Positions 1,160 through 14,687 of a DNA stretch of 64,000 nt are shown one piece after another. Where the stretch lies: positions 3,720,001 to 3,784,000 of the forward strand of contig JBLDXI010000003.1 in the NCBI GenBank assembly GCA_047495785.1, in the 5' to 3' direction. The position numbers and the translations under genes were made by a program. The notes beneath the pieces were generated by a model that was not told where the DNA came from, made no database searches, and saw only the letters and a list, made by a program, of their open reading frames with translations. Position 1 is the stretch's first letter, and each line of letters begins with the position of its first letter. This DNA is from Lepidodermella squamata (Eukaryota; Animalia; Gastrotricha).

Positions 1160-3500
1160 TTATTGCTTGTATTGACCCTCAGTGGCCTCCTCGAAGCGCT
1201 CGAATATCGCTTTAAGATTAGCGAAATCAGTCCGCTGCTCTGGGTCGCGGTGCCAGCACAGTTTGATGACGTTGTAGAGCGATTCTGGACATAGCGTTTT
1301 ATCCATAGCCTGGCACTCCGCCAGCGACATGACGACGCCGTTCAAAATTGCCCGTTGAGCGTCTGTATTCGATCGAATCGATGGGTAAGGCACGTTGCCG
1401 AGTGACACTACTTCGAAAGCTATGATTCCGAAGGACCATACGTCAGATTTGAGGGAGAATTGCAAACTGGCTAGAGCTTCGGGCGCTGTCCATCGAATGG
1501 GCAGTAGGCGGCTTGTTGACTCATAAATTCCCTCCGGCACGATTCGAGATAAGCCGAAATCAGCAATTTTGACCTCTAAGCTTCCATTACCGACTTCGTG
1601 GACAAGGACATTGTCGGCTCTCTGATTGAAAAAAAAATGAAAAAATCTCTAAAATTAATATAAATCGTACCAAATCTCTATGAATGAAATTTTTCAATTC
1701 GAGATAAGCCATTCCAGATGCTATTTGCCGTAGAATGTAAATGATAGTTTCGAACTCGATTGTCCGCCGTTTTTCCGGCGTTGTGACGTATTTTTTCAAC
1801 GAGCCGCCGTTCATGAATTCGGATACGAGGCAGAACGGCGGTTGATCCACGCAAACGGCAATTAGCTTCACGATATTATCATGGAAAAGCCGGGCCATAA
1901 CCAGGCCTTCGTCCAAAATTTGATCGGGTGATATGGCTTCGTCGTCCGGGTCGCATTCAGGGAAAATTAGCTCCTTAATTGCTACATCGAGATGCTTCAA
2001 CTTCCCTAAAAACGGAGGGATTCAAAAATTTATTGAAAAAATTGAAAATTTAACTCACCTTTATAAACATTTCCGAACTTTCCATTTCCTAATTTATCAA
2101 AATATTCAATGCTTGATTTCGGAATTTTGATGTCTTCAATTGTGAGCGGGTGGGCGGAATCGTCGGGTGGTAAAAATCCGGATGTTAAAATAACATCCCT
2201 TTGAATCGGATTAGCTAATAAAAAGAAATTAAAATTTCAAATTTCAAAAGCAATGAATAAAATACCTCGATAATAATTGACTAAGCTTTGAACATCTTCA
2301 AATGTTTTTGCGGGATATATGAAGCAACCGTAGCCGTCCGTCAAGAAATAAATCTGGCATAAATTTCAAAATTTTGCAAAAGGAAAAATTATGAAAATTT
2401 TACTTTAAATTTGGCAAGAGAAGGCACTCCATTTTCAACGCCGGCTCTGACAGATAAAGCGATACAGTTCTCTGCAGAACTGTCAGCACTAGGCCGCATT
2501 AAAAATACACCGTTCGCGACATTCGGCCGCATCAGCATTATCGATGCTGATCGTTTATCGGCTGTGGCATAAAAATAACTAAAAAATAATTTGATTAATA
2601 AAAACGATTGATTTTTCGATATTTTGTTACCTCTGATGACGTGCGGCTGATGGGCTAGAGTATCGGTCCTCTTCTTCGAGGCAAACTAAGGGAGCTAGAC
2701 CGACTTCACTTGTAGTCTGGTTTCGGACATAAGCGTACTGATCAGGTAGCTCGCCGCCGCTGTAACCAAATTTTTATTCAATTTAATTAAATAAAAAATA
2801 ACTTACTATTCAACTGATTCGAGAATATCTCCGGCACTGAACGATACTTCGTTTGTGATTCGCTTATCAAAATCGCGAACTGCGACGTAGCCCTGCAATA
2901 TTTCCATCTCTGATTGAAAACAGAGATAATAATTATTTTGATTTAATTTTTGGAATAATTACTTCTCCGAGTTTCAGCCGGAGCTGCTGTGGTGATGAAG
3001 GGTGTCGACTGCTGGCCCGGGCGTTGGGTGACTCGAAGTAAACACCGGATTTGGTACTTTGAATTCGGTTCCAGCTCAGCGGTCACCAGCCGGTACTTGG
3101 CCGCACTTTCCTCGTGCGCAACATTTCGCCACGCTGTTGCGCCATTTTGCCGCACTTGAACCGCGGTTATTTCGAACTTGGCCGGCTGCGGGCGGAACTG
3201 CACGTAAATGTCAACCATGTGAAATCGGACGGAAATTTTAAGCGACGCTGTGATTTGCTGTGACAGATTGGGCGAAGAATTCGCGGATGCTGAAGCAGCA
3301 GCCATTGAAACTCTGTTGTGCGAAGCCGCTGATGAACTGTTCGCCTTTAATAACACCCCATGACCAGACACCTCATCGCTGAAAAATGACTCCGATGCCA
3401 TTGAAACAGATGGCTGGGGTTGAACTTTCATTGGACTCGGCATAACATCCACCGGTCGCTTTTTACTCGACCCGCTAAGCTTGCCTATACAGCTTCCCAT
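1160..3500 (-). CDS. Src-like non-receptor tyrosine kinase 1 (myristoyl-FN3-SH3-SH2-kinase), multi-exon
   Basis: N-terminus MGSCIG; FN3-like exon (..ELEPNSKYQIR..); SH3 (YVAVRDFDK..VSFSAGD..GLAP); SH2 (FLMRPS); kinase motifs GNGKFG, VAIK, HRDL/RADN, DFG, PIRWTAPE, SDVWSFG; C-tail EATEGQYKQ resembling the Src Y527 region. Exons join in phase at GT-AG sites. Confidence 0.92.
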
Positions 3501-3921
3501 TCTATTTTGAAAATAATCAGGTCATTTCTATAAAAATGAAAGTAGCCGATCGCTTTATTGCTGGCAATTAAATTTAGATGGACGTATAACAAGTAGCTGG
3601 AGATATCTCTCAAGTCAGTTCTCGATTAGGGACAGCATTGGCTATAACGAAAGGGTGTAACTATAAAAATGTTGTGCTGACGTGAAAATGCGGGCTATCT
3701 GGCATTTTTCGTGAGATAATTGATACGCGAGATAAAGGTGGGCGACCTTGGAGTTACGCCCCCATTTGCGTAGAAATTCTAGTGATAACATAAAAATTAC
3801 AGAAAACTCTGCATTAAAATATGTTATTTTTATTCATTTTTCCCCAATGATGCGAGCAAAGCAGATCAAGTGTAAATAATAACATTTTCATTAAAACATA
3901 ATAACATCAACAGATGAATAC

Positions 3922-6900
3922 TCAGGTTGTGTAATTTGAAGCTGATTCATAATTATCCAAGAAATCGCTAAGAAATGCAAAAGTCGGACGGTCATCCGGG
4001 TCCTTTATCCAGCATCGCGAAATTTCACGAAATAGAGACTCCGGACATAGGTCCTCAATAGGCCGTTGCCTAGGCAACGAAACAACTCGTCGGTTGTTTC
4101 GACAATCGTCAATTGATATCCGGCCACCCGATTGAATAAACGGAAAAATATCGTCGTTTGCTTTTCCTGAAAAAAAAACAAATTTTAAGATGGTTTTGCA
4201 AATATTTCTCTGCTAAAATTGTGATCTAGTTGCAATTTCAGCATTTTCCTTTCTTGATCAATTTTTCCTTAAAGATGCTCCCTAATCCCAAATATAAGGC
4301 CAATTTTCCTCTTACCTCTTACCCTTGCCCTTTTAAAACTTAATACAGTGCTCCCTCGTTAAAGGCACCCTTGTTATACCGTAGTGTGGGGTTACTTGGC
4401 CGGAAAAGCAGTTTTTGGCGTCTCAAAACGAGCTTTTATCGTAAACCCCCCGCAAATTTAATATCAGCAGATTCCTCGTTTGATGATCTAGCGATAGCCG
4501 CAAACCCCGTCAAACACCGATGCACCTGGTCGGTTTTATCAGGGTTTGAAGCATCGGGTCCAAGTGGGGCAACTTGGCCGGAGCGCGGGATAACTTGGCC
4601 GCATGGCTATTTCACTTGGCGATGAACCATCTGACAGAAACTAGGGCGATGATTCATCACGCCCTCTCGTGTCCAGGCCAAATTTTAGTGCGCATTTCGC
4701 ACGTTAAAAATCGGCCAAGTTACCCCACAAACTTCAAGTGCTCACTGCTCGTGTTTCCGCCAACAGATTTTCAAGTTTGAGGTGTATTTTGAAAGATCTC
4801 AACGAGAGGATTCCGAATCTGAAAACAGCGTCGTCTGAAACTTCCTCAATGGCGAGATTTTCAATGCCAAAGTTTCAAAGATCAAAATCGATCAGTTATT
4901 ATCGATTATCGATTTTGATTCGTCAACAATTTTAAAATTCGAAAAAGTGCTCAATGTAGCCCAAGTGCCACAGATGGACTCAATGGAAAAAAACGCGGAG
5001 AAAAGATTTGATTTAGCTGTGATATCGATGGTGAATCGACTTTTCCGGCCAAATTACCCCCCGGTCAAGATACCCCACACTACGGTAAGACCGTTTCTTT
5101 ATCGAGGGCTGTTTACGATCGGAAGAGGATTAGCGCCCCACATGGTGCCAATTTTTTGCTTTTTCGTAATAAATGTACGGCACCCTTGTTAAAAGCACCC
5201 CTTGTTTAAAGAACGGGTCTGGCTCCCAACCCAGTGCTTTTATCGAGGGAGCACTGTATATCGGGAAAATCACTGATTTGTAAAATCGATATCAGAAATC
5301 GATATCAGCTTTAGACTAACTCGCAAAAACTGACCATTAATACAGAAAAAAAATTCGTGTAATAGTGGGACCTATCAGTTAGTTATCCTAATTAAGAAAC
5401 CTTAATCAGCTAAACCTAAAAATTCATTTTTCAAAAAATTTAGAGCAAGATCTTCAAATTTAGTGCTGGATATCCCCAAAATTAGAGCGCGCACATTTGC
5501 AAATTATTTATTTTATACCTTTATAAGGTAGACCGCCCAAAGTGAAAACCTCATATGCCAGAATGCCGAAAGACCAAACGTCGCTTTTGAAAGAGAAGAT
5601 GCGATGAAAAGCTGCCTCGGGCGCCGTCCATCGAATCGGGACAAGCGTATCCGGACCCGACCTGTGAACCATTTCATTATCCCGCAATTTCGTCGTCAAG
5701 CCGAAATCGGTAATTTTGATCTCGAGTTGGTCATTTTCATCGTGGACTAACACATTCGCTGCTCGTAGATCGCGATGTATGACGCTTTTTTTCTCGAGAT
5801 AGGCCATTCCAGCTGCGACTTGGCTCAGAATGAAAACAGCGTCGAGCATTTGAATTTCGACAACGGCCGCGTCATCTTTCAGCCAACTCTGCAGCGACCC
5901 GCGGTTCATGAGTTCGGAAATCAGGAGGTAAGGTTCAGCGTCCAGGCTGACCCCAATCAATTTGACAAGGTTCTCGTGAAACAACTCCGCCATCCTCCTA
6001 GCTTCATCTAGCAGCTCTTCCCGGTTGCCAAGCACCGACCCAGTTCCACTGGTATCAGTCAGCAGCTTTTTAACAGCGACTTCTAGGTTATTCAATTTCG
6101 CCCTGTATACCTCTCCGAAATTTCCATGGCCTATTTTGTTCAGGAGCGTGATTTGAGACGATGGTATCTTAAGTTCATTAATGTCAAGTGGAGGCTCAGG
6201 TGTACGCGGAAAGGATTTCGTTAGCATAATTTGTCGATTTGCCGAAATATTATTTTCTGTAATTAAATTCAAATGATTAATTATAAGAATTAATTTCAAG
6301 AAATTCGTCAACTTTGAAAATGGTCGATAAGCAGAGTAACATCTTCAAAGATGCGCGTCGGTATGTTCAGGTAACACCCGAATCCATCGGGCATAAGGAA
6401 AATTTTAAAATGTTCCACCAGTGGAACGCCGTTTCGATTCATGCCTAGTCTGACTGTTAGGGCCATGAAATCAGGGCTATGCGATGGCCGGATGAGGAAG
6501 CGGCCCTTTTCAACATTCGGCCGTATCATCCGAACCTCTGCCTTGCGGCGATTCACGTTTTCAAAATAGCAACTGAAAATTAATTATGAAAAATTGGTAT
6601 AAAAAATTGCAAAAAATTACTCTTGATTTGCTATCAAAGCTGGCCGATCTCCCGTTGGATTCCGGGTGCAAGTAACCAAGGGAACGTAGCCAAATAGGCC
6701 AGTTCGAGCATTTTTGGCGTAAATAAAACCGTCGGCAACAGTTTTCGGCTGGACACTGGAAAATTAACAGATAATTACAACTAAATATTTACCTAATTTC
6801 CTACCTTGAATCTTCTAATAAATTATCACCAGTAATTGTTGATAATTCGTGTAAAACTCTTTTAGTGAAATCAATCGTGGCAGTATAGCTTTTTATCGTC

Positions 6901-7428
6901 GACATGGCTGGAAATAAAATTTCAAGATTTATTTTCAAATTAATTTAAAAAGAATTGAAATTCCTAACGTTTTGATGTTGTAATAGATTGCATTGGCGAC
7001 TCGGCGAAAATTGAACCGTCAGCTTCACCGCTTATTCTAGCTAGTACTTGATATTCAGTTCGAGGTTTGAGGTTCTGAATCGTGGTCACTCGGCCAGGGC
7101 ATTCTTTAGCAGCCCGAATTTCCTCACGCGGAATTTGCGTCCACTCGACCTCTTCGCCGCTAGGCATTATTCGATAGAAAATAACGTAGCGGCTTCTCGG
7201 CGGCATTTTTCCGAGATTTCCATTGTCCATCGGCCTCACGTATACGTCGATCATGTCGAATCTGGCGGATAGAAATAGCTCGAGAACGATATTGGTCTTG
7301 CTGGTCGGGGTGCGAGATCGATTGGCAATCGGTGTCGGAATTTCCAAAGGAATTTCATCATTTTTAAGTTTTTGATCCGAATTTTCAACGATCGAGGGCT
7401 GCTTTGGTGAGCTGAAGCAAGAACCCAT
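3922..7428 (-). CDS. Src-like non-receptor tyrosine kinase 2 (myristoyl-FN3-SH3-SH2-kinase)
   Basis: MGSCFS start; FN3 (IQNLKPRTEYQVLA); SH2 FLIRPS; GHGNFG, VAVK, HRDLRAAN, DFG, PIRWTAPE. The last exon 4166-3922 (GKANDD..LCPESLF..CW..DPDDRPTF..NYTT*) follows a 1.35-kb intron (4167-5518). Confidence 0.92.
4346..5256. mobile_element. Tc1/mariner-type MITE (outer) in the last intron of kinase 2
   Basis: TIRs cagtgctccctcgttaaaggcac / gtgcttttatcgagggagcactg; TA on both flanks (4344-45, 5257-58). Confidence 0.85.
4379..5085. mobile_element. CCGTA-ended MITE nested in the outer MITE
   Basis: TIRs ccgtagtgtggggttacttggccgg / ccggtcaagataccccacactacgg; TA on both flanks. Confidence 0.85.
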
Positions 7429-7746
7429 TTTCCGGCTGAAGTAAATTGCTAGATTTGCATGTATTTACAAACCGGTACCTAATAGTCCAAATAATATGCC
7501 ACCCACTTTTAGAGATAAAACTGCCTAGTCCACCCATTTAATTAAGGTAATTCCTTATCGCAGACTGACTCTTCAGAGATTAGGTATATTAACAATTGTA
7601 CTAAAAGACATAAGTTTTTTTGTTAACTGGGTATGAATCATCCAAGTCGATTATCCGGATAGCCAAAATTGGAGGAGATTCGTCCTAATAACTGAGAATG
7701 ATCGCAGTTATGACGGAAATTGGGCAAAGTTCGCCGTATTAGCATA

Positions 7747-8109
7747 CATCGTGTCCCATAAGCTCCACAACCGTATTTGGAATTTTGGGATTTTTTTCAG
7801 GAATTTAAACTGATTTTTTGAATGTTCACTGCGGGAATCCTCCATTCTTTATGCATGAGTTTACCGAAGAAATTGAAAAGCCATGAAAACCCCGATGGTA
7901 ACTAGTTCGGTAATTTTCGGTATTTACCTGGTTGGATCAAATTTCTTCGGATTTTTTTAATTCCATTCACACTTGATTACTATTCTTCTGGCATTTTAGA
8001 TTTTTCTAAGATTTTTCTTGCCATGAGATATGACTTCCCCTATCATTTAAGATTTTCTGACCCCTTTTCCGTGTATTTCCTTTCTTTGCGTTACTTATGG
8101 GGCACACTG
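7747..8109. mobile_element. MITE, family shared with 62933-63293 and about 61430-61625
   Basis: Imperfect TIRs (catcgtgtcccataag / cttatggggcacactg) with TA flanks. The internal sequence (aaccccgatggtaactagttcggtaattttcgg..., ccttttccgtgtattt) recurs at about 63070-63290. Confidence 0.7.
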
Positions 8110-9207
8110 TATTAAATTAGTAAAAGGGATTCCTAATTCCAAGGGATTCCAAACATGCCACCTCTTACCCTAATACCACCCTAAAATTCGTCAGATCAAA
8201 TTTACCTATAAAACGCAAAAATAATGAAAACTTAGTTGAACTATTTTGATTGATCCTAAATCCTAAATAAATACGGCTACTAAAAAACATTCCTTTCGTT
8301 TATATCCTTAAAAAGCCTTCATACCAATTAAAAAATAATATACGAATATTTTCGAGAAAATGGTATTTTATTTTATCCCTCATCATGTTGACGAATCTCT
8401 GCAAGAAATCTTAACAAAATTAAAAATTCGTTTGATAATCATTTTGGACTTCGAAATTGTCGAAAAACGCAGAAAGTTGGGCGAAAGTCGGCCGAGAATT
8501 CGGATCACGGCTCCAACATGCTGCCATCTTTTCATACAAACCATCAGGGCAGAGTTCTTCGGCCGGCTTGCGGCGTTTTATGGCCTAAAACGCGAATATG
8601 TCGCACCAAACAGCGTTTTGAAAAAGTCATATGATCGGAAAAACCGATATAGATTCTGAAAGCCCTGGTTTCGGGCTACATTAGGAACTTACAATTTTTC
8701 ACTTTCTCAGATGACGTAACACTTATTACGTCATGTCAAAATACTACCTAACAGGCGTGCCAAAAAAGTGTTTAGAGCAAATTTTGCCACTTGATTGCGA
8801 GCAAAGTGTAACAGCTGGGCTTTTATCGTTTTGCAAGTGTGTGAAGGTTATGTCAACAGAGATTTCCTGAAAATTTCGGCGTCTTTTGACAAACAGATGT
8901 TGCGTAATTGTCAAATATCAAAACGCTGTCAAATGCCATCTGTCGGTGACAAAATTGATCTTCGTTGTAGCCAGCTCTTAGAATCCGTGAGTTATAGGCT
9001 CCAAATATGTTTCTGAAATCCCCAGTGACCATATCTATTTAATTTGACACTTAAAAGCTATGTGGGAGTTCTCCGTATACTAGTAATCAGCGTCACCGAG
9101 GGAGAAAGTTTCTGTCGGTGACGCTATTTTTTTCCTGTCACCGACAGATAAATTAACTATTTTTATGCTGTTTAGTCATTATTTCGGCATTTTATTGAAT
9201 ATTGAGT

Positions 9208-10664
9208 ATGCCAGCAAAAAGCGGAGCTGAAAGGACTGCAAAATGGCGTTCTAATCTCAGTCAAAAACAAAAGGCGGACATTCGAGAACATGATCGACTG
9301 TACCACACCGAAACACGGGCAGCAGAATCGTCCGCTGAGACGGAAAAGCGACGCAAGAAGGACAGGGAGAGTAAAAAAGCTACCTATGATATGAAAAAGG
9401 CAGCTAAAACCGAAGTTGTCGATACACCAGTGGTGGAAGAGCCTGATGAAAGCCATGAAGAAAACAACGACTCGGCTTATTCGAGTCGGCAGCGATTAGG
9501 TCGCGATTATGCAAAACTCTGGAGAGCACTGCCGACAGATCCTTCGAAGCAGCAAGTTCTGGCCATGAAGCTAGCTAAGGACCAAGGTCTCGGCAAGCAA
9601 TTACCTAAGAGGCAATACAAGGGGCGACCGATTACCGAGCAATTGAAGGTATTAATTCAGGAAATATATGAAGAACATTCCCGAGTATCGCCAAATCAAC
9701 GTGACGTTCACAAAAATGGTAAATCGAAAATGTTTATGGACATACCAATTAACGAATTATTTGGTATATTCTGCCGCCGCCACGGCGAAAATTTGATTGG
9801 CAAAACGAAGTTTCAAAAGCTCAGGCCGGAACATGTTATCACGGATGACAAAATACCGGCTAACGTCTGCGTTTGCGTCGTTCACGAAAACGTCAGGCTT
9901 GTCCTGGAAGAGCTTCATCGCGTTGAAAAAGAGTTCCCGATTTCAACTCATGATCTAGTTGCCCAGGTAGAAATGCTTTATCATTACCTATTGGATTCGT
10001 AACACTAATAATTATTTCGATTTAGATTACCTGTGGATCCGAACTCGAGGAAAATTGTGCAAATGGGCTTTGTGAGAACTGCGGAATGGGTCGTTTGCTG
10101 GACTTGGAAGCACGGCTCTTTCCGGATATCAACGCGAGAATGGCTACCATTGTAAATTTCAGAGAATGGAAGGCTGGATCGGAAACATACATTGATAAAA
10201 CAGGTAAAATTATCTTTGTAAATCCCGCCTTTTCACATGTCATTTTTACCTAGGATGTGAAAAAGGAACGTCACGCACGAAAAAGACGCCCGGCTCCTAT
10301 TTCGCGAGCTGGTTCAGTGAAAAGACCGGCAACTGCTGCAGCTAAAAGACCGGCAACTGCTGCAGCTAAAAGACCGGCAACTACTGCATCTAAAAAACCA
10401 GCAACTGCTTCAGCGAAAAGATCAGCAACTGCATCGAAAGTCGACGATTCATTCGACGATTCATCATCTGACGAATCTGACCAAGAACCGCTGACCTATC
10501 TGAAAAGTAAATGTGCCAGGTGCGACATAAGCTGGTCGGAATGGAAAAAACAATCGAAGGAAGGTCAGGAATGGGGCCTTTGCAGCTGGTGCTTCGAATG
10601 GTTCTGCTTTATCTGCTCTCGAAAGGCCAACTCAAAGTTCATCTGCTCGGAATGTCAGGACTAA
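9208..10664 (+). pseudogene. Truncated transposase of the Sola2-like element (N-terminal part plus C-terminal PHD-like finger)
   Basis: Exons 9208-9966, 10026-10203 and 10254-10664. The second junction is out of phase (phase-1 donor, phase-0 acceptor), consistent with deletion of catalytic exons. C-terminus CARC..WGLCSWCFEWFCFIC..FICSEC. Confidence 0.7.
10320..10440 (+). repeat. 24-bp coding tandem repeat (KRPATAAA, about 4 copies)
   Basis: aaaagaccggcaactgctgcagct repeated with decay. Confidence 0.85.
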
Positions 10665-12077
10665 CAATTATTTTGCTGTCACTGCTTTTTTCCCCTCCTT
10701 ATACTCCTATGTATTGATTCTCGAGTTGTTATGTGGTCATTACTAGTAAATATGGCGAAAAAAATCAATTTGAAAATGTCTTTTTAAAACCTCTATCGGT
10801 GACATTTTGCCTCCTCCGTCGGTGACGCAGTTTTTGTACCTCCCTGGCCTAATTTGAAATAAACTCGTCACTTTGTTTATGTTTTTTTATTCCTTGAACC
10901 TGTGCGGAAGTTTTAAAATTCATAAATAATCTTTTAAACCCAAATCTGATTAGGAAATTTAGTTGGAAAAAAATGCGAAAAACAGCAAAAACATTTTTTC
11001 TCCGTCGGTGACGGCCCTATTTTCGACCCACCCTGCAATGGCCTTGAACTCGGTTGAGTCGCGGATAGGCTTAAAACATAGCCCTAAGTGGCATACACAC
11101 GTTATTAGAAGCGCTCAAGAAAATACATCGCCGTTGCCTGTGAAAACTGCCTGATGTGTCGAAAAAAAAGTTAATCTTCTCTGTCGGTAACTCGTGTTTT
11201 AGGCCTTATATCAATTTTACGGAGATTTTTTCGACACTCACTAAGTGCGATTACGCCACCATTTGTCACATACTTGACGACTTCGTCATTTTTCATTTCT
11301 GCAAACATATTGGAAATTACTCAAAAACAAAGAAAAATACTAAATTATCAAAATACCTTGGTATGGCATCCCTCCTAATGTTACGATTTCATAGCACAGG
11401 ATTCCAAAGGCCCAAACGTTTGATTGCGCAGAGAATTCCCGATGTAACAAAGCCTCAGGTGCCATCCATCGGATAGGTGCCAAGGTATTATCGGAAGACA
11501 CGTGTACATCTTCACAAAGGTTTGAGAAGGCGAAATTGCCGATTTTCACTTCTAACTGGCCGCCGTCATCGTGAACCAGCACATTTGCAGCCCTCAAATC
11601 GCGATGTAAAACGTTTTGCTGCTCTAAATGCGCCATCCCAGCCGTGACTTGGCTCATGATGAACAGAACGTCATTGAGTTGAAAGTCGGCAACATTCGAA
11701 TCGTTCTTCAGGTAGCGGAGCAACGATCCGGCGTTCATAAATTCGTAGACGATTTTAATGGGCTCAACGTCGTTGCAAATTGCTATCATCCTGACTAAAT
11801 TATCGTGGTTAAATACAGCCATTAATTCGCGCCTGCGAAATCGCGAAGATTCTTCGTATAGGTCTTTTGGCAATTGTTTAACGGCGACGTCAAAGCCGCA
11901 AAATTTTCCTTCAAATACTCCTCCAGAAATAGGCTTTCCTATAGTAATTTTATCAGACGGTATCAATAACTCTTCCGACCTTGGAGGCGAAGGATTTCGG
12001 GGAAACGGTGCTACTAGGAAGTGATTCGGATGAGTGGCTAGAGAATTAACTGAAAAATCACAACATTCTATCAAGTA

Positions 12078-12688
12078 CCGTATTTCTCGAAAATTTACCG
12101 CGGGCTATATTTATGAACAAATGATTTTTGATTCGGGTTGTATTAGGGAGTGGGGATATATACGGGTGTGCTGTTTAATTGCGAATCATCACAAAAAGCC
12201 GCGAGCAATTCGTATTAAGACGACGTTTTTAGATTGTTTTATTTGTCGATTCAGTGAAAATGCGAGGGAATACTTGCGGTGCCGCTTTCGCTTGTCTTCT
12301 TCGGACACCTGGACGGAATCTTGAAGACGATCAGGAGAGCCAGCCATCATCGATTCCAGAAGGTTAAAACGATTAAGAAGGATATGAAAATGTTAAAATA
12401 AAACTCTGTGTCTCAGCTAGTGAATGCTGAATGGGCATTTTCTGCTGGCTTATGAATGGTGCCAAGATCAGACGTTGCGAAGCTGCTTACGCGATAGCTA
12501 ATCACTGATTACGATAATGCGTCATTAATAAGGCTTTTCTTTTGTTCCAACGCATGCTTCGCCCAAATTAAAATAGCTGTGGTACAATTTCGAGGCCTGG
12601 GTTAAATATGAACAAACGATTTTTTCGTCGGGTTGTATTAGGGAGCGGGGATATATACAGGTGTGTCGTATATTTTCGAGAAATACGG
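12078..12688. mobile_element. CCGTA-ended MITE in a kinase 3 intron
   Basis: TIRs ccgtatttctcgaaaat / attttcgagaaatacgg; TA flanks; internal ~55-bp direct repeat (tcgggttgtattagggag.ggggatatatac.ggtgtg) near both ends. Confidence 0.85.
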
Positions 12689-14687
12689 TATTTGTTGGAA
12701 AATAAACTCTTACCTGTGTAAAAATCAACCAAATCACAGATGTTTTCGAAGGTTCGGACCGGGAACGAAACAAAACAACCATAGCCATCTTGCAAAAAGG
12801 TAATCTTCAGAGCAATTTCGAGTGAAAAAGACGTACATTTTTGAAGGTAAAATTCGAACCTGATAATGGCAAATGTAAGGACTGCCGTCTTCTTTAGTTC
12901 CAAATCTCGCGGATAATGCCATGAAACGGCTATGGGCTGAGGGCCGTATGAGAAACCTGCCTGATGGAACATTTGGTCTCAGCAACCAAACCATCGCTGT
13001 CCTCCGATTGATGTTGAAGAAAAATCTAGGAAATTCAGGATTAGGATTATAAAAAAAATGTGACATTCTAAGTTTTTACTCTTGATCTCTAATGTTAGGA
13101 GGCCGGTCTAAAGACTTCTTCCTTGTGACGCACGAATTTGGCACGAAGCCAACTTGATCGGTTGCCAAGTTTCGGAGGTATACTTTATCGGAAATTTCTC
13201 GACTGAAAATCAGGGAAAATTGTAAATATATTATTTGCAATAAAATGAAATCCTCACTCGGATGGCTCAGTTATGAGTTTATCTCCATTTTTTACTGAAA
13301 GACAGCCATCTTGTGAAGATTCGTAGTCTGAAATAGCCAGATATCCGAGCTTGGGAATAGGTGTTTCTGATAAAATTAAGATTTCAATTAATTAATCTTG
13401 ATTACGATGATGCCTATACTTTTTCCAGTCGGCACGGCTAGAATATTTGATTCCGCCAATGTTGATTCGTCATCAATCAGTGTTAGCTCAGCTCGAACCT
13501 CGTAGTTGGTATCTTCCTCTAGGTCCATCACCGTGCACATTCTCCCAGGCTTATCGGAATACGCTATCACCTCACTTTGCGAGCAATCGATCCAAGCGAA
13601 ATCACCCGATTTTCGATACATGAAATCATAGCGGCGCCTCATTGCCGTTGAATCACCGCCGACTGGTTTCGCGTAGATATCGATCACGTTATACCGGACT
13701 GAGGCGAAGATCAACAGCTGGATGGATTCATCGTTTTTTTGAGACGCCTTAGAATGTTGTAGTGACAATATTGCCTTCTGGCTTCGCACTGAGCTGGATT
13801 TGCGTCGAGATGGGAAACAGCATTTCATTTTACCGAATTATAAGTCTGATGTGGGCTACTGAAACATCAATTTGACTGATATCGGGTGCCTGCTTACACA
13901 TGGAGATAAATAAGGACGCATTAATTGTTTAAGCAGATAAATTTATCATACTTGCGTTATTCATGTTAAAACAAGATAACAATGTCGCAAAATTCCAGGA
14001 ATATTTGTTTTTAGCAGAAAAAGTTGATGACACACCTTTTCTCGGTAGTCCGATTTCTGAGCAAATAGAAACGTCACCGTATAGCGCCATTGAAGGGCAA
14101 AAATGGACTGGAGAGCGAAACCGAATTTTGAGACGCACGACTGATGTCAAAGGATTAATTTTGAATGTTGCGGTGGCTTTGAAACACTTCAGAAAGAAAT
14201 TAAGGGAATAAATATAGACTTCTTGCTTCCCGCGTGAACAATTGAAAATTGAAAACCTCTTTCAGATTCTGGAAGGTGCGTTTGAAAAAAACCTTGAAAC
14301 TCGCATCAAGGTGTAACTTTTCAGGTTAGTTTATTCGTATAGTGGATATTCGTACTTGAACGGCTTTCCGGTTGCGTAATATTCGAGGTTTTTTGATCAT
14401 AAGCATTTAAAACTAAGAATCATATCTCATCTAGAATTTTGAGATAACTTGGCCTTATCAAATTTGCAGGCAAAATCATGCAATTAGAGTTGGAAAGCTC
14501 AGGGAACCTAAAAAGTACCGAACCTTCGATCGAACTTTATCAAAATAGGAAAAGGCTCCTGATTTTGTCACCAGATTTGATAGGGTCAAGTTATCTCCGC
14601 CTTGCTGAAACAGCGGCTGGCTGCTTCTGTGCTGTTCAATGAGATCTCCTGAGGTTCGACTCCAAGTCCATCGGCTCTAATTTTTAT

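Follow-up and report, generated by a model that had tools for sequence, protein, structure and literature searches.

Tec kinases have the layout PH-TH-SH3-SH2-kinase, with a lipid-binding PH domain, no acylation and no tail tyrosine, and FN3 domains are known from inside the cell as binding or spacer modules in RIM-binding proteins (SH3 and FN3), titin-type kinases and the C-I group of MID/TRIM proteins. Across animals and the unicellular lineages related to them, the layouts of cytoplasmic tyrosine kinases, among which the Tec family is listed, are conserved, in contrast to a fast turnover of receptor kinases (PMC4342544). Choanoflagellate non-receptor tyrosine kinases with added domains (C2, FYVE, PTB) provide a precedent for domain shuffling (PMC3082566). 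The present analysis concerns three Src-like kinase genes, called A, B and C in their order along the DNA, which lie head to tail on the minus strand of a 64,000-nucleotide stretch of the Lepidodermella squamata genome (the window, G000:C3:3720001-3784000; assembly of 121 Mb in 151 contigs).

The layout of all three genes is an acylation-type N-terminus, disordered residues, a beta module of about 100 residues, SH3, SH2, a Src-type kinase and a tail tyrosine. The explanation that we hold to be likely as a whole is that the window carries a tandem array of three cytoplasmic, N-terminally acylated Src-related kinases with a divergent FN3-type domain, working by the mechanism proposed below, and that the family would have arisen within this animal lineage from a Src-type ancestor. 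A Src-derived kinase with an intracellular, folded FN3 domain would be an exception among animal layouts.

The N-terminal module and its connection to SH3

An earlier note on this DNA, made from the letters alone, had described an FN3-like module in the first coding exon of each gene, and profile matches and AlphaFold models both support an FN3-type fold. The modules are located as follows.

2964..3263, minus strand: gene A FN3-type module, 100 amino acids (aa), based on AlphaFold, structural matches and similarity to the metagenome protein P0033
6970..7299, minus strand: gene B FN3-type module, 110 aa, based on AlphaFold, VIA matches and ESM Atlas
13421..13729, minus strand: gene C FN3-type module, 103 aa, based on similarity to B and on the alignment

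The strands quoted in the note (Y.I.YR..W; IQNLKPRTEYQVLA, VMDLEEDTNYEVRA, AELEPNSKYQIRC) were all found on the minus strand. Over about 100 residues, the first exons of the three genes can be aligned with 26-31 % identity and eight invariant positions. Modules B and C share 33 % identity over 111 aa (E 1.2e-9), and B matches A across the first two strands (E 5e-5). L77, Y83 and T73 are invariant and Y.I.YR falls in strand C, as read from the alignment rather than from a structural superposition; by the same reading strand B has no evident Trp, and the invariant Trp follows strand C.

Searched against PDB, a profile of the three modules matched FN3 domains only (Tie2 at E 0.0011, gp130 at 0.014-0.07, and NCAM), and the alignments were in register from strand C up to and including the L.P.T.Y tyrosine corner. 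The same profile gave 49 matches at E<1e-3 among 1.84 billion representative proteins, the best at 3.8e-19. Fourteen of these were scanned: ten were FN3-repeat proteins (11 had an FN3-type match) and three, P0033 among them, had no family match. The AlphaFold2 model of module B is all-beta with seven strands (predicted local distance difference test, pLDDT, 86.6; predicted TM-score, pTM, 0.80), and that of module A is also all-beta (pLDDT 77, pTM 0.65). With the module B model, VIA matches had Z-scores of 10-12.1 and root-mean-square deviations (rmsd) of 2.3-3.0 over 90-98 aa, and roughly 40 of the top 50 were FN3 domains; the predicted model superposed best on IL-10R-beta D2 (Z 12.1, rmsd 2.3 over 98 aa). 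The best structural matches of the module A model were mostly FN3 (Z 8-8.9), Foldseek returned insulin-receptor FnIII-1 and IFNAR2 D2, and the ESM Atlas feature neighbours of module B were mainly FN3 clusters (scores 0.91-0.94). Since the PDB profile, the profile against 1.84 billion proteins, the structural matches of the AlphaFold models and the ESM Atlas neighbours agree, we conclude that the N-terminal module is a divergent FN3-type domain, as far as sequence and predicted structure can tell.

The Pfam and Foldseek results were mixed. The three-copy profile finds FN3, but the Pfam cut-off for fn3 was missed (B: fn3 E 0.06, 14 bits against a cut-off of 25; A: FN3_DSCAM E 0.04; C: no FN3-type match). 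Foldseek matched FN3 domains, but it placed nanobody and Fab V domains beside them at similar E-values, and the gene A model also matched a few carbohydrate-binding modules and a filamin domain (Z 8.1-8.6). The module could on these grounds be a generic immunoglobulin-like sandwich (V-set, filamin or CBM-like) outside the FN3 superfamily. We consider this very unlikely, as every PDB profile match was FN3, strand for strand and including the tyrosine corner, the scanned significant matches among the 1.84 billion proteins were FN3-repeat proteins, and FN3 dominated both the VIA matches of the better model and the ESM Atlas neighbours.

The FN3-type module of each gene is preceded by a linker.

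3264-3500, minus strand: gene A N-terminal linker, 79 aa, MGSC acylation motif and Ser/Ala-rich stretch
7300-7428, minus strand: gene B N-terminal linker, 43 aa, MGSCFSS acylation type
Minus strand: gene C N-terminal linker, 33 aa, basic, MKCCFPS, no myristoylation signal

The N-termini read MGSCIGK (A), MGSCFSS (B) and MKCCFPS (C), so the acylation-type starts MGSC, MGSC and MKCC are present as the note had quoted them. The PROSITE myristoylation pattern G-{EDRKHPFYW}-x(2)-[STAGCN]-{P} after Met1 is matched by A and B, both with Cys4, but not by gene C, which is without Gly2 and for which palmitoylation is the sole acylation option. In a 19-residue hydropathy scan of exon 1 and the SH3 exons, the highest value was only 1.14, so that a signal peptide and a membrane segment are absent, as the note had stated; this maximum lies within FN3 strands A-B, and the N-termini are polar. 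The absence of a hydrophobic segment, together with the myristoylation pattern in A and B, supports a cytoplasmic location of the module in A, B and C.

The claim that FN3 stands in place of the unique region has to be corrected. Between the acylated end and the module, 79 (A), 43 (B) and 33 (C) low-complexity residues persist, and as these 33-79 disordered, acylated residues remain, FN3 is inserted between a shortened unique-like stretch and SH3 and does not take the place of that stretch. The region between SH4 and SH3 is thus not purely disordered in A, B and C, but contains a folded module (predicted) of about 100 residues, and the junction from module to SH3 is about ten residues long.

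Whether exon 1 belongs to the same protein as SH3 depends on the gene models, which are as follows.

1160..3500, minus strand: gene A, 8 coding exons, 661 codons, stop-free segments with GT-AG in-frame junctions; exons 3500-2963, 2909-2807, 2759-2631, 2578-2404, 2353-2266, 2214-2059, 2005-1671, 1621-1160
3922..7428, minus strand: gene B, 6 coding exons, 646 codons; exons 7428-6969, 6907-6805, 6755-6621, 6572-6313, 6256-5519, 4166-3922
8420..13828, minus strand: gene C, 7 exons, 613 codons with the insert and one target-site copy ignored; exons 13828-13420, 13366-13258, 13202-13080, 13025-12860, 12804-12714, 12049-11357, 11298-11206 continued at 8577-8420

The junctions were read by eye and with a small script; all are GT-AG and in frame, and the model lengths are multiples of three. 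GC content is about 40-45 %, and the introns are mostly 50-60 nucleotides (nt) long. Introns common to A, B and C have phases 1 (exon 1/SH3), 2 (inside SH3), 2 (SH3/SH2) and 1 (SH2/kinase). A phase-0 intron inside SH2 is found in genes A and C, while the SH2 of gene B is one exon, and a phase-0 intron in gene A cuts the catalytic loop (HRDL/RADN, the stroke marking the intron). The start codons (A 3500, B 7428, C 13828) are the first Met 3-12 codons after an in-frame stop; acceptor-like motifs upstream of them showed no consistency when A, B and C were compared. The models bear out three tandem Src-like kinase genes within 1160-13828, the extent given for them, with the amendment that gene C reaches down to 8420 and has its last exon split by a transposon. 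The last intron of gene B measures about 1.35 kb (window 5520-4170), compared to 50-60 nt for the others of that gene.

A connection between the module and SH3 is seen in a related species. The sole true relative in the protein searches was P0033 (187 aa, ENA metagenome assemblies), whose single open reading frame (ORF) runs from MGACYGK through a linker and the module and covers the first half of SH3; its module is 37 % identical to that of gene A over 82 aa (E 4e-16). The four contigs of P0033 (L007, L008, L012, L013) are about 99 % identical to each other, too close for a useful ratio of non-synonymous to synonymous substitution rates (dN/dS). Contig L007 encodes the same series, from MGAC through linker and module to the first SH3 half, without a break in the reading frame, and in tblastx comparisons these contigs match gene A in the same order (module 36 %, SH3 65 % and 41 %, SH2 48 % and 39 %, kinase N-lobe 60-85 %). 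A further contig from the same samples (L015:1-3872, ENA ERZ23486764 scaffold_28758) has two tandem genes, whose kinases share 49-50 % identity with B. One ORF of the first gene spans a module remnant and the whole SH3. The second starts MGNSVTC, and the E-G strands of its module are apparently missing, which leaves only some 50 nt from the C' region to the SH3 ORF; a deletion or an assembly fault could explain this. Compared to the profile, the L015 modules are in the right register at values that are not significant (hhalign E 0.03 and 0.09), and they probably belong to the family.

The phase-1 intron that separates module and SH3 in A, B and C is absent in the related species, and since that species has both in a single uninterrupted ORF, the sequences support that exon 1 module and SH3 belong to one protein. 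It could be argued that the donor sites in the window are predictions, and that exon 1 might be a separate small gene never spliced to the SH3 exon, i.e. an artefact of the gene models. This appears extremely unlikely: the phase-1 junction occurs at the identical place in three diverged paralogues, two different genes of the related species hold module and SH3 in one uninterrupted frame, and kinases deprived of exon 1 would have neither a start codon nor an N-terminus.

Core domains, condition of the copies and descent

The domains that follow the module are located as below.

2631..2909, minus strand: gene A SH3, exons 2909-2807 and 2759-2631 with a phase-2 intron between them
2266..2578, minus strand: gene A SH2, exons 2578-2404 and 2353-2266, with the FLMRPS arginine
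1160..2214, minus strand: gene A kinase domain, from Pfam on two exons and motifs
6621..6907, minus strand: gene B SH3, exons 6907-6805 and 6755-6621, tiling the paralogue SH3
6313..6572, minus strand: gene B SH2, one exon, Pfam SH2 5.4e-7
5519..6256, minus strand: gene B main kinase exon, the kinase being completed in exon 4166-3922
11357..12049, minus strand: gene C kinase exon, PK_Tyr_Ser-Thr 1.4e-49

Pfam PK_Tyr_Ser-Thr was matched at 1.3e-60 (B), 1.4e-49 (C) and, over two exons, at 2.9e-23 and 1e-25 (A). SH2 was matched at 5.4e-7 (B) and 6.8e-4 (C); the gene A SH2 exons were assigned by comparison and not by Pfam, being 48 % identical to the SH2 frame of L007, which itself matches Pfam SH2 at 1.8e-7. 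The phosphotyrosine-binding Arg motif of SH2 in the window genes is FLIRPS or FLMRPS. SH3 was scored by halves, because an intron cuts the domain in A, B and C: the first halves matched SH3_1 at 0.035 (A) and 0.044 (C), and the gene B halves and the remaining halves were blank. The halves of all three genes nevertheless tile the intact, Pfam-positive SH3 of two paralogues in the same genome, L010 and L011. In the alignment to these paralogues, none of the three genes has the WW-pair Trp or the P.NY Tyr; other residues stand at these positions.

The best named PDB relatives of the gene B kinase are Lyn, Fyn, Src, Lck and Hck (1e-46 to 1e-41), although one EGFR-named chain, 9p9u_A, outscores them (2.9e-62). 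The catalytic loop reads HRDLRAAN in B and C and HRDL/RADN in A, and the tail tyrosines are found in EGQYKQ-stop (A), SNYTT-stop (B) and NDYQTNF (C, beyond the transposon). Pfam kinase and SH2 matches, the paralogue-tiled SH3 and the motifs bear out a probable SH3, an SH2 and a kinase with the Src-type HRDLRA(A/D)N, as had been stated earlier, and support that A, B and C are real Src-related SH3-SH2-kinase genes.

The three copies are not equivalent in state. The gene A kinase keeps GNGKFG, VAIK, the alpha-C Glu, HRDL/RADN, DFG, the activation-loop Tyr (EGIYES) and a Src-like tail; judged by these motifs, every catalytic and regulatory residue is present in copy A and conserved between species. 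The gene B kinase keeps GHGNFG, VAVK, HRDLRAAN and DFG, with Met at the position of Src Tyr416 (DNEM versus DNEY in Src), so that copy B is, by motif, catalytically equipped and lacks the autophosphorylation tyrosine. The gene C kinase keeps the VAVK Lys and HRDLRAAN; its glycine loop is degenerate (ISGGVFE), NFA is found instead of DFG, and its activation loop (EDVHVS) has no Tyr. The autophosphorylation tyrosine is thus found in A, and not in B or C.

The last coding exon of gene C is interrupted by a mobile element.

8582..11205, strand not assigned: terminal-inverted-repeat transposon, 2,624 bp, inside the gene C last coding exon
9202-10002 (266 aa) and 10257-10664 (135 aa), plus strand: transposon ORFs inside the element

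The ends of the element are GGCCTAAAACGCGA and the reverse complement of TCGTGTTTTAGGCC, with a flanking TTAT duplication, and its terminal inverted repeats begin GGCCTAAAAC. The two ORFs matched no Pfam family. Without the insert, the last exon of gene C reads in frame and aligns without gaps to that of gene B; in the assembled sequence, a stop at 11173-11171 closes the frame after 572 codons, and the kinase end and tail are lost. Other copies in the genome, some of them internally deleted, are 99-100 % identical (contigs C19, C36, C31, C25), so the insertion in gene C is recent, and the element, by this measure, is or was recently active. Since the DFG Asp and Gly2 are lost and a transposon has recently truncated the gene, copy C looks catalytically dead, a pseudokinase or a dying gene.

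A canonical Src, L010, is present in the genome as well, with MGNC, a low-complexity unique region in which no credible family match was found, SH3, SH2, kinase and the tail SQYREAPT. L011 is an SH3-SH2-kinase gene with a short N-terminus, and L009 (G000:C3:4400500-4410400, minus strand) is an SH2-kinase gene that starts MSAVIKKKKRS and ends DYEEEHFND. In an IQ-TREE analysis, in which gene A was entered as two separate rows with its exons unjoined and the references were proteins of at most 467 aa, A, B, C, L010, L011, L009, the genes of the related species and a tapeworm kinase formed a clade (97/98, starred in the tree). A Src/Frk-like assemblage encloses this clade, from which the Csk-like and Eph-like rows stand apart, and the kinase-domain phylogeny proposed as a check has thus placed A, B and C together with canonical Src. 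Within the starred clade, a group at 88/92 unites A, B with C (94/88), L009 and the L015 genes; L010/L014 and L011 stand next to it. There is moderate support, from the kinase sequences, for a loose grouping of A, B and C beside the canonical Src of the genome, and L009 may belong to the family and have lost its N-terminal domains. Outside this genome, the closest kinases with a name are those of flatworms.

Between the two species, canonical Src shows 92 % identity in SH2 and 83 % in the kinase, compared to 48 % and about 60 %, respectively, for gene A and L007. The FN3-bearing genes would thus evolve several times faster than canonical Src, provided that the metagenome contigs come from one organism, as the shared samples suggest; the fast evolution claimed earlier agrees with the far lower identity of gene A. 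An origin by exon shuffling, which the earlier note had inferred, is not established: the phase-1 boundary at the 3' end fits, but exon shuffling remains unproven because no donor FN3 and no 5' intron were found and the intron is absent in the relative.

Divergence of this size also raises the possibility that the family is decaying duplicated DNA, with FN3 copies that are non-functional or being lost and an exon 1 without a role. Several features would fit such decay: NFA for DFG, the degenerate glycine loop, the missing Gly2 and the young transposon of gene C, the missing activation-loop Tyr of gene B, the replaced SH3 ligand-binding Trp and Tyr of all three genes, the loss of half of the module in the second L015 gene, and a divergence far above that of canonical Src (SH2 48 % versus 92 %). 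Nevertheless, every exon of A, B and C is open and the splice phases are conserved despite a module identity of 26-33 %, which argues for constraint, because unconstrained DNA would not keep open exons and splice phases at such divergence. Gene A, moreover, retains all catalytic and regulatory residues and has a collinear open-frame counterpart in another species, and four sequences of the module agree in the hydrophobic pattern of their strands and in eight invariant positions. Decay of the family as a whole is therefore quite unlikely.

The family seems to be restricted in distribution. In its own genome, the module profile found the three copies only and one chance-level match. The exon-1 alignment, run as a word search through 5.8 billion proteins, returned P0033 only, two JGI metagenome scans found no relative of the module, and a local hidden Markov model (HMM) of the module, run against the fetched loci, found nothing upstream of L009, L010 and L011 or on contig L016. 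None of nine mid-length profile matches that were scanned had a kinase domain. The searches of 1.8 and 5.8 billion proteins thus support a family restricted to the three copies here and relatives in one related species, and the lineage-specific character proposed earlier stands. A literature search for a combination of FN3, SH3, SH2 and a non-receptor tyrosine kinase found nothing. Within the literature and the module-based searches, which follow this module's sequence so that independent layouts with an unrelated FN3 fall outside them, the putative acylated FN3-SH3-SH2-kinase layout was found described nowhere else.

One candidate for the same layout was rejected. P0085 (NCBI, Alosa pseudoharengus 'tyrosine-protein kinase yes-like', 336 aa) a fish protein, is without SH3 and SH2: half an FN3 is fused straight to a kinase of the Yes type, in which DFF stands in place of DFG and the tail Tyr is missing. 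Probably, the gene model is chimeric or the copy decayed, and the layout is a different one.

In the wider genome, a kinase query gave at least 59 tyrosine-kinase exons at E<1e-20, many in dense tandem arrays: C30:1256227-1335621 (nine or more within 80 kb), C46:400323-447621, C29:3732371-3758843, C24:1138527-1224824 and C31:845622-949738. These arrays suggest large lineage-specific expansions of tyrosine kinases. Contig L016, from another sample (L016:6208-9721, ENA ERZ25072854 ctg35997), has a Src-like SH3-SH2-kinase gene and, after it, an ORF of 795 aa that matches COR-A weakly and a Death-domain ORF.

Possible roles of the module

We propose that myristate and/or palmitate would hold the proteins at the inner face of the membrane. 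Csk-type autoinhibition would be possible through SH2 and the tail tyrosine, and the genome contains a Csk-like gene (G000:C55:1569562-1571033, E 1.3e-71 against a sea-cucumber CSK-like protein). FN3 would rigidly adjoin an SH3 in which other residues stand in for the usual ligand-binding Trp and Tyr, and would most likely provide an extra protein-binding surface that chooses partners, i.e. receptor tails or substrates, or else be part of an autoinhibitory assembly. We infer, in line with the earlier note, that it could serve as a membrane-proximal recognition module. In a more specific form, which is conceivable but rather unlikely, FN3 would be a new targeting device of Src-type kinases, a cytosolic, membrane-proximal docking module that takes over partner selection from the weakened SH3, with each paralogue tied to a different lineage-specific receptor tail, as Lck is to CD4 and CD8 by its unique region. 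If so, the fast divergence of FN3 would reflect co-evolution with expanded surface-receptor families of the animal.

The short junction of about ten residues between module and SH3 is also consistent with FN3 being mainly an internal regulator, which packs on SH3 or the kinase and replaces a weakened SH3-linker clamp, or promotes dimerisation. The replacement of the WW-pair Trp and the P.NY Tyr in SH3 and the missing activation-loop Tyr of B and C point in the same direction, and because that Tyr is absent, the control of B and C must differ from that of Src. The module, however, changes fastest, which suits changing partners better than a fixed internal contact, and we regard such a primarily regulatory role as doubtful.

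Several points weigh against the explanation preferred here, i.e. cytoplasmic, acylated kinases with an FN3-type domain. The Pfam fn3 gathering cut-off was reached by no copy in single-exon scans, Foldseek TM-scores were about 0.6 with nanobody V domains also among the matches, and the AlphaFold alignments of the modules had only five rows. The exon joins of the window genes rest on predicted splice sites, and their SH3 was scored as exon halves only. The FN3-bearing clade is not strongly supported and includes L009, which has neither SH3 nor FN3. Two of the three copies show signs of relaxed constraint, so that decay, instead of diversification, may apply to part of the family.

The practical importance of a family limited to an obscure lineage is modest. 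The array does offer natural experiments: on ways to supplement or replace the disordered unique region and the SH3 of Src, on the cytoplasmic reuse of an "extracellular" module, and on young kinase paralogues in three states, i.e. a canonical enzyme, one without autophosphorylation and a transposon-hit pseudokinase.

Comparison with known systems

The window genes resemble the Src family (c-Src, Fyn, Lck, Lyn; Src42A/Src64B type) in the acylated N-terminus, the order SH3-SH2-kinase, HRDLRAAN and the tail tyrosine, and in copy A only also in the activation-loop Tyr. Unlike the Src family, they insert an FN3 module between the disordered stretch and SH3, the SH3 Trp and Tyr are replaced, B and C have no loop Tyr, and C has NFA.

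With the Tec family they share a Src-related core behind a folded N-terminal domain. The window genes differ from it in having FN3, acylation and a tail Tyr, and the likeness applies to the core. The choanoflagellate kinases, of which MbSrc4 carries a C2 domain, differ in having other added domains and a protist host, whereas the window genes have FN3 and belong to an animal.

FN3 domains of intracellular proteins are also found among the structural matches of the module B model, i.e. those of integrin beta4, Midline-2 and CRLF3 (Z 10-10.8). None of the intracellular FN3 proteins compared is a Src-type tyrosine kinase, in contrast to the window genes.

The receptor kinases (Eph, Tie2, insulin receptor, Ros/Sevenless, Axl/Mer) likewise combine FN3 and a tyrosine kinase in one chain, and FN3 domains of Tie2, insulin receptor, ROS1, Sevenless and EphA2 are among the sequence or structural matches of the module. 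In the receptors, however, FN3 is extracellular and a membrane segment precedes the kinase, whereas the window genes carry neither a signal peptide nor a membrane segment and have SH3 and SH2 between FN3 and the kinase.

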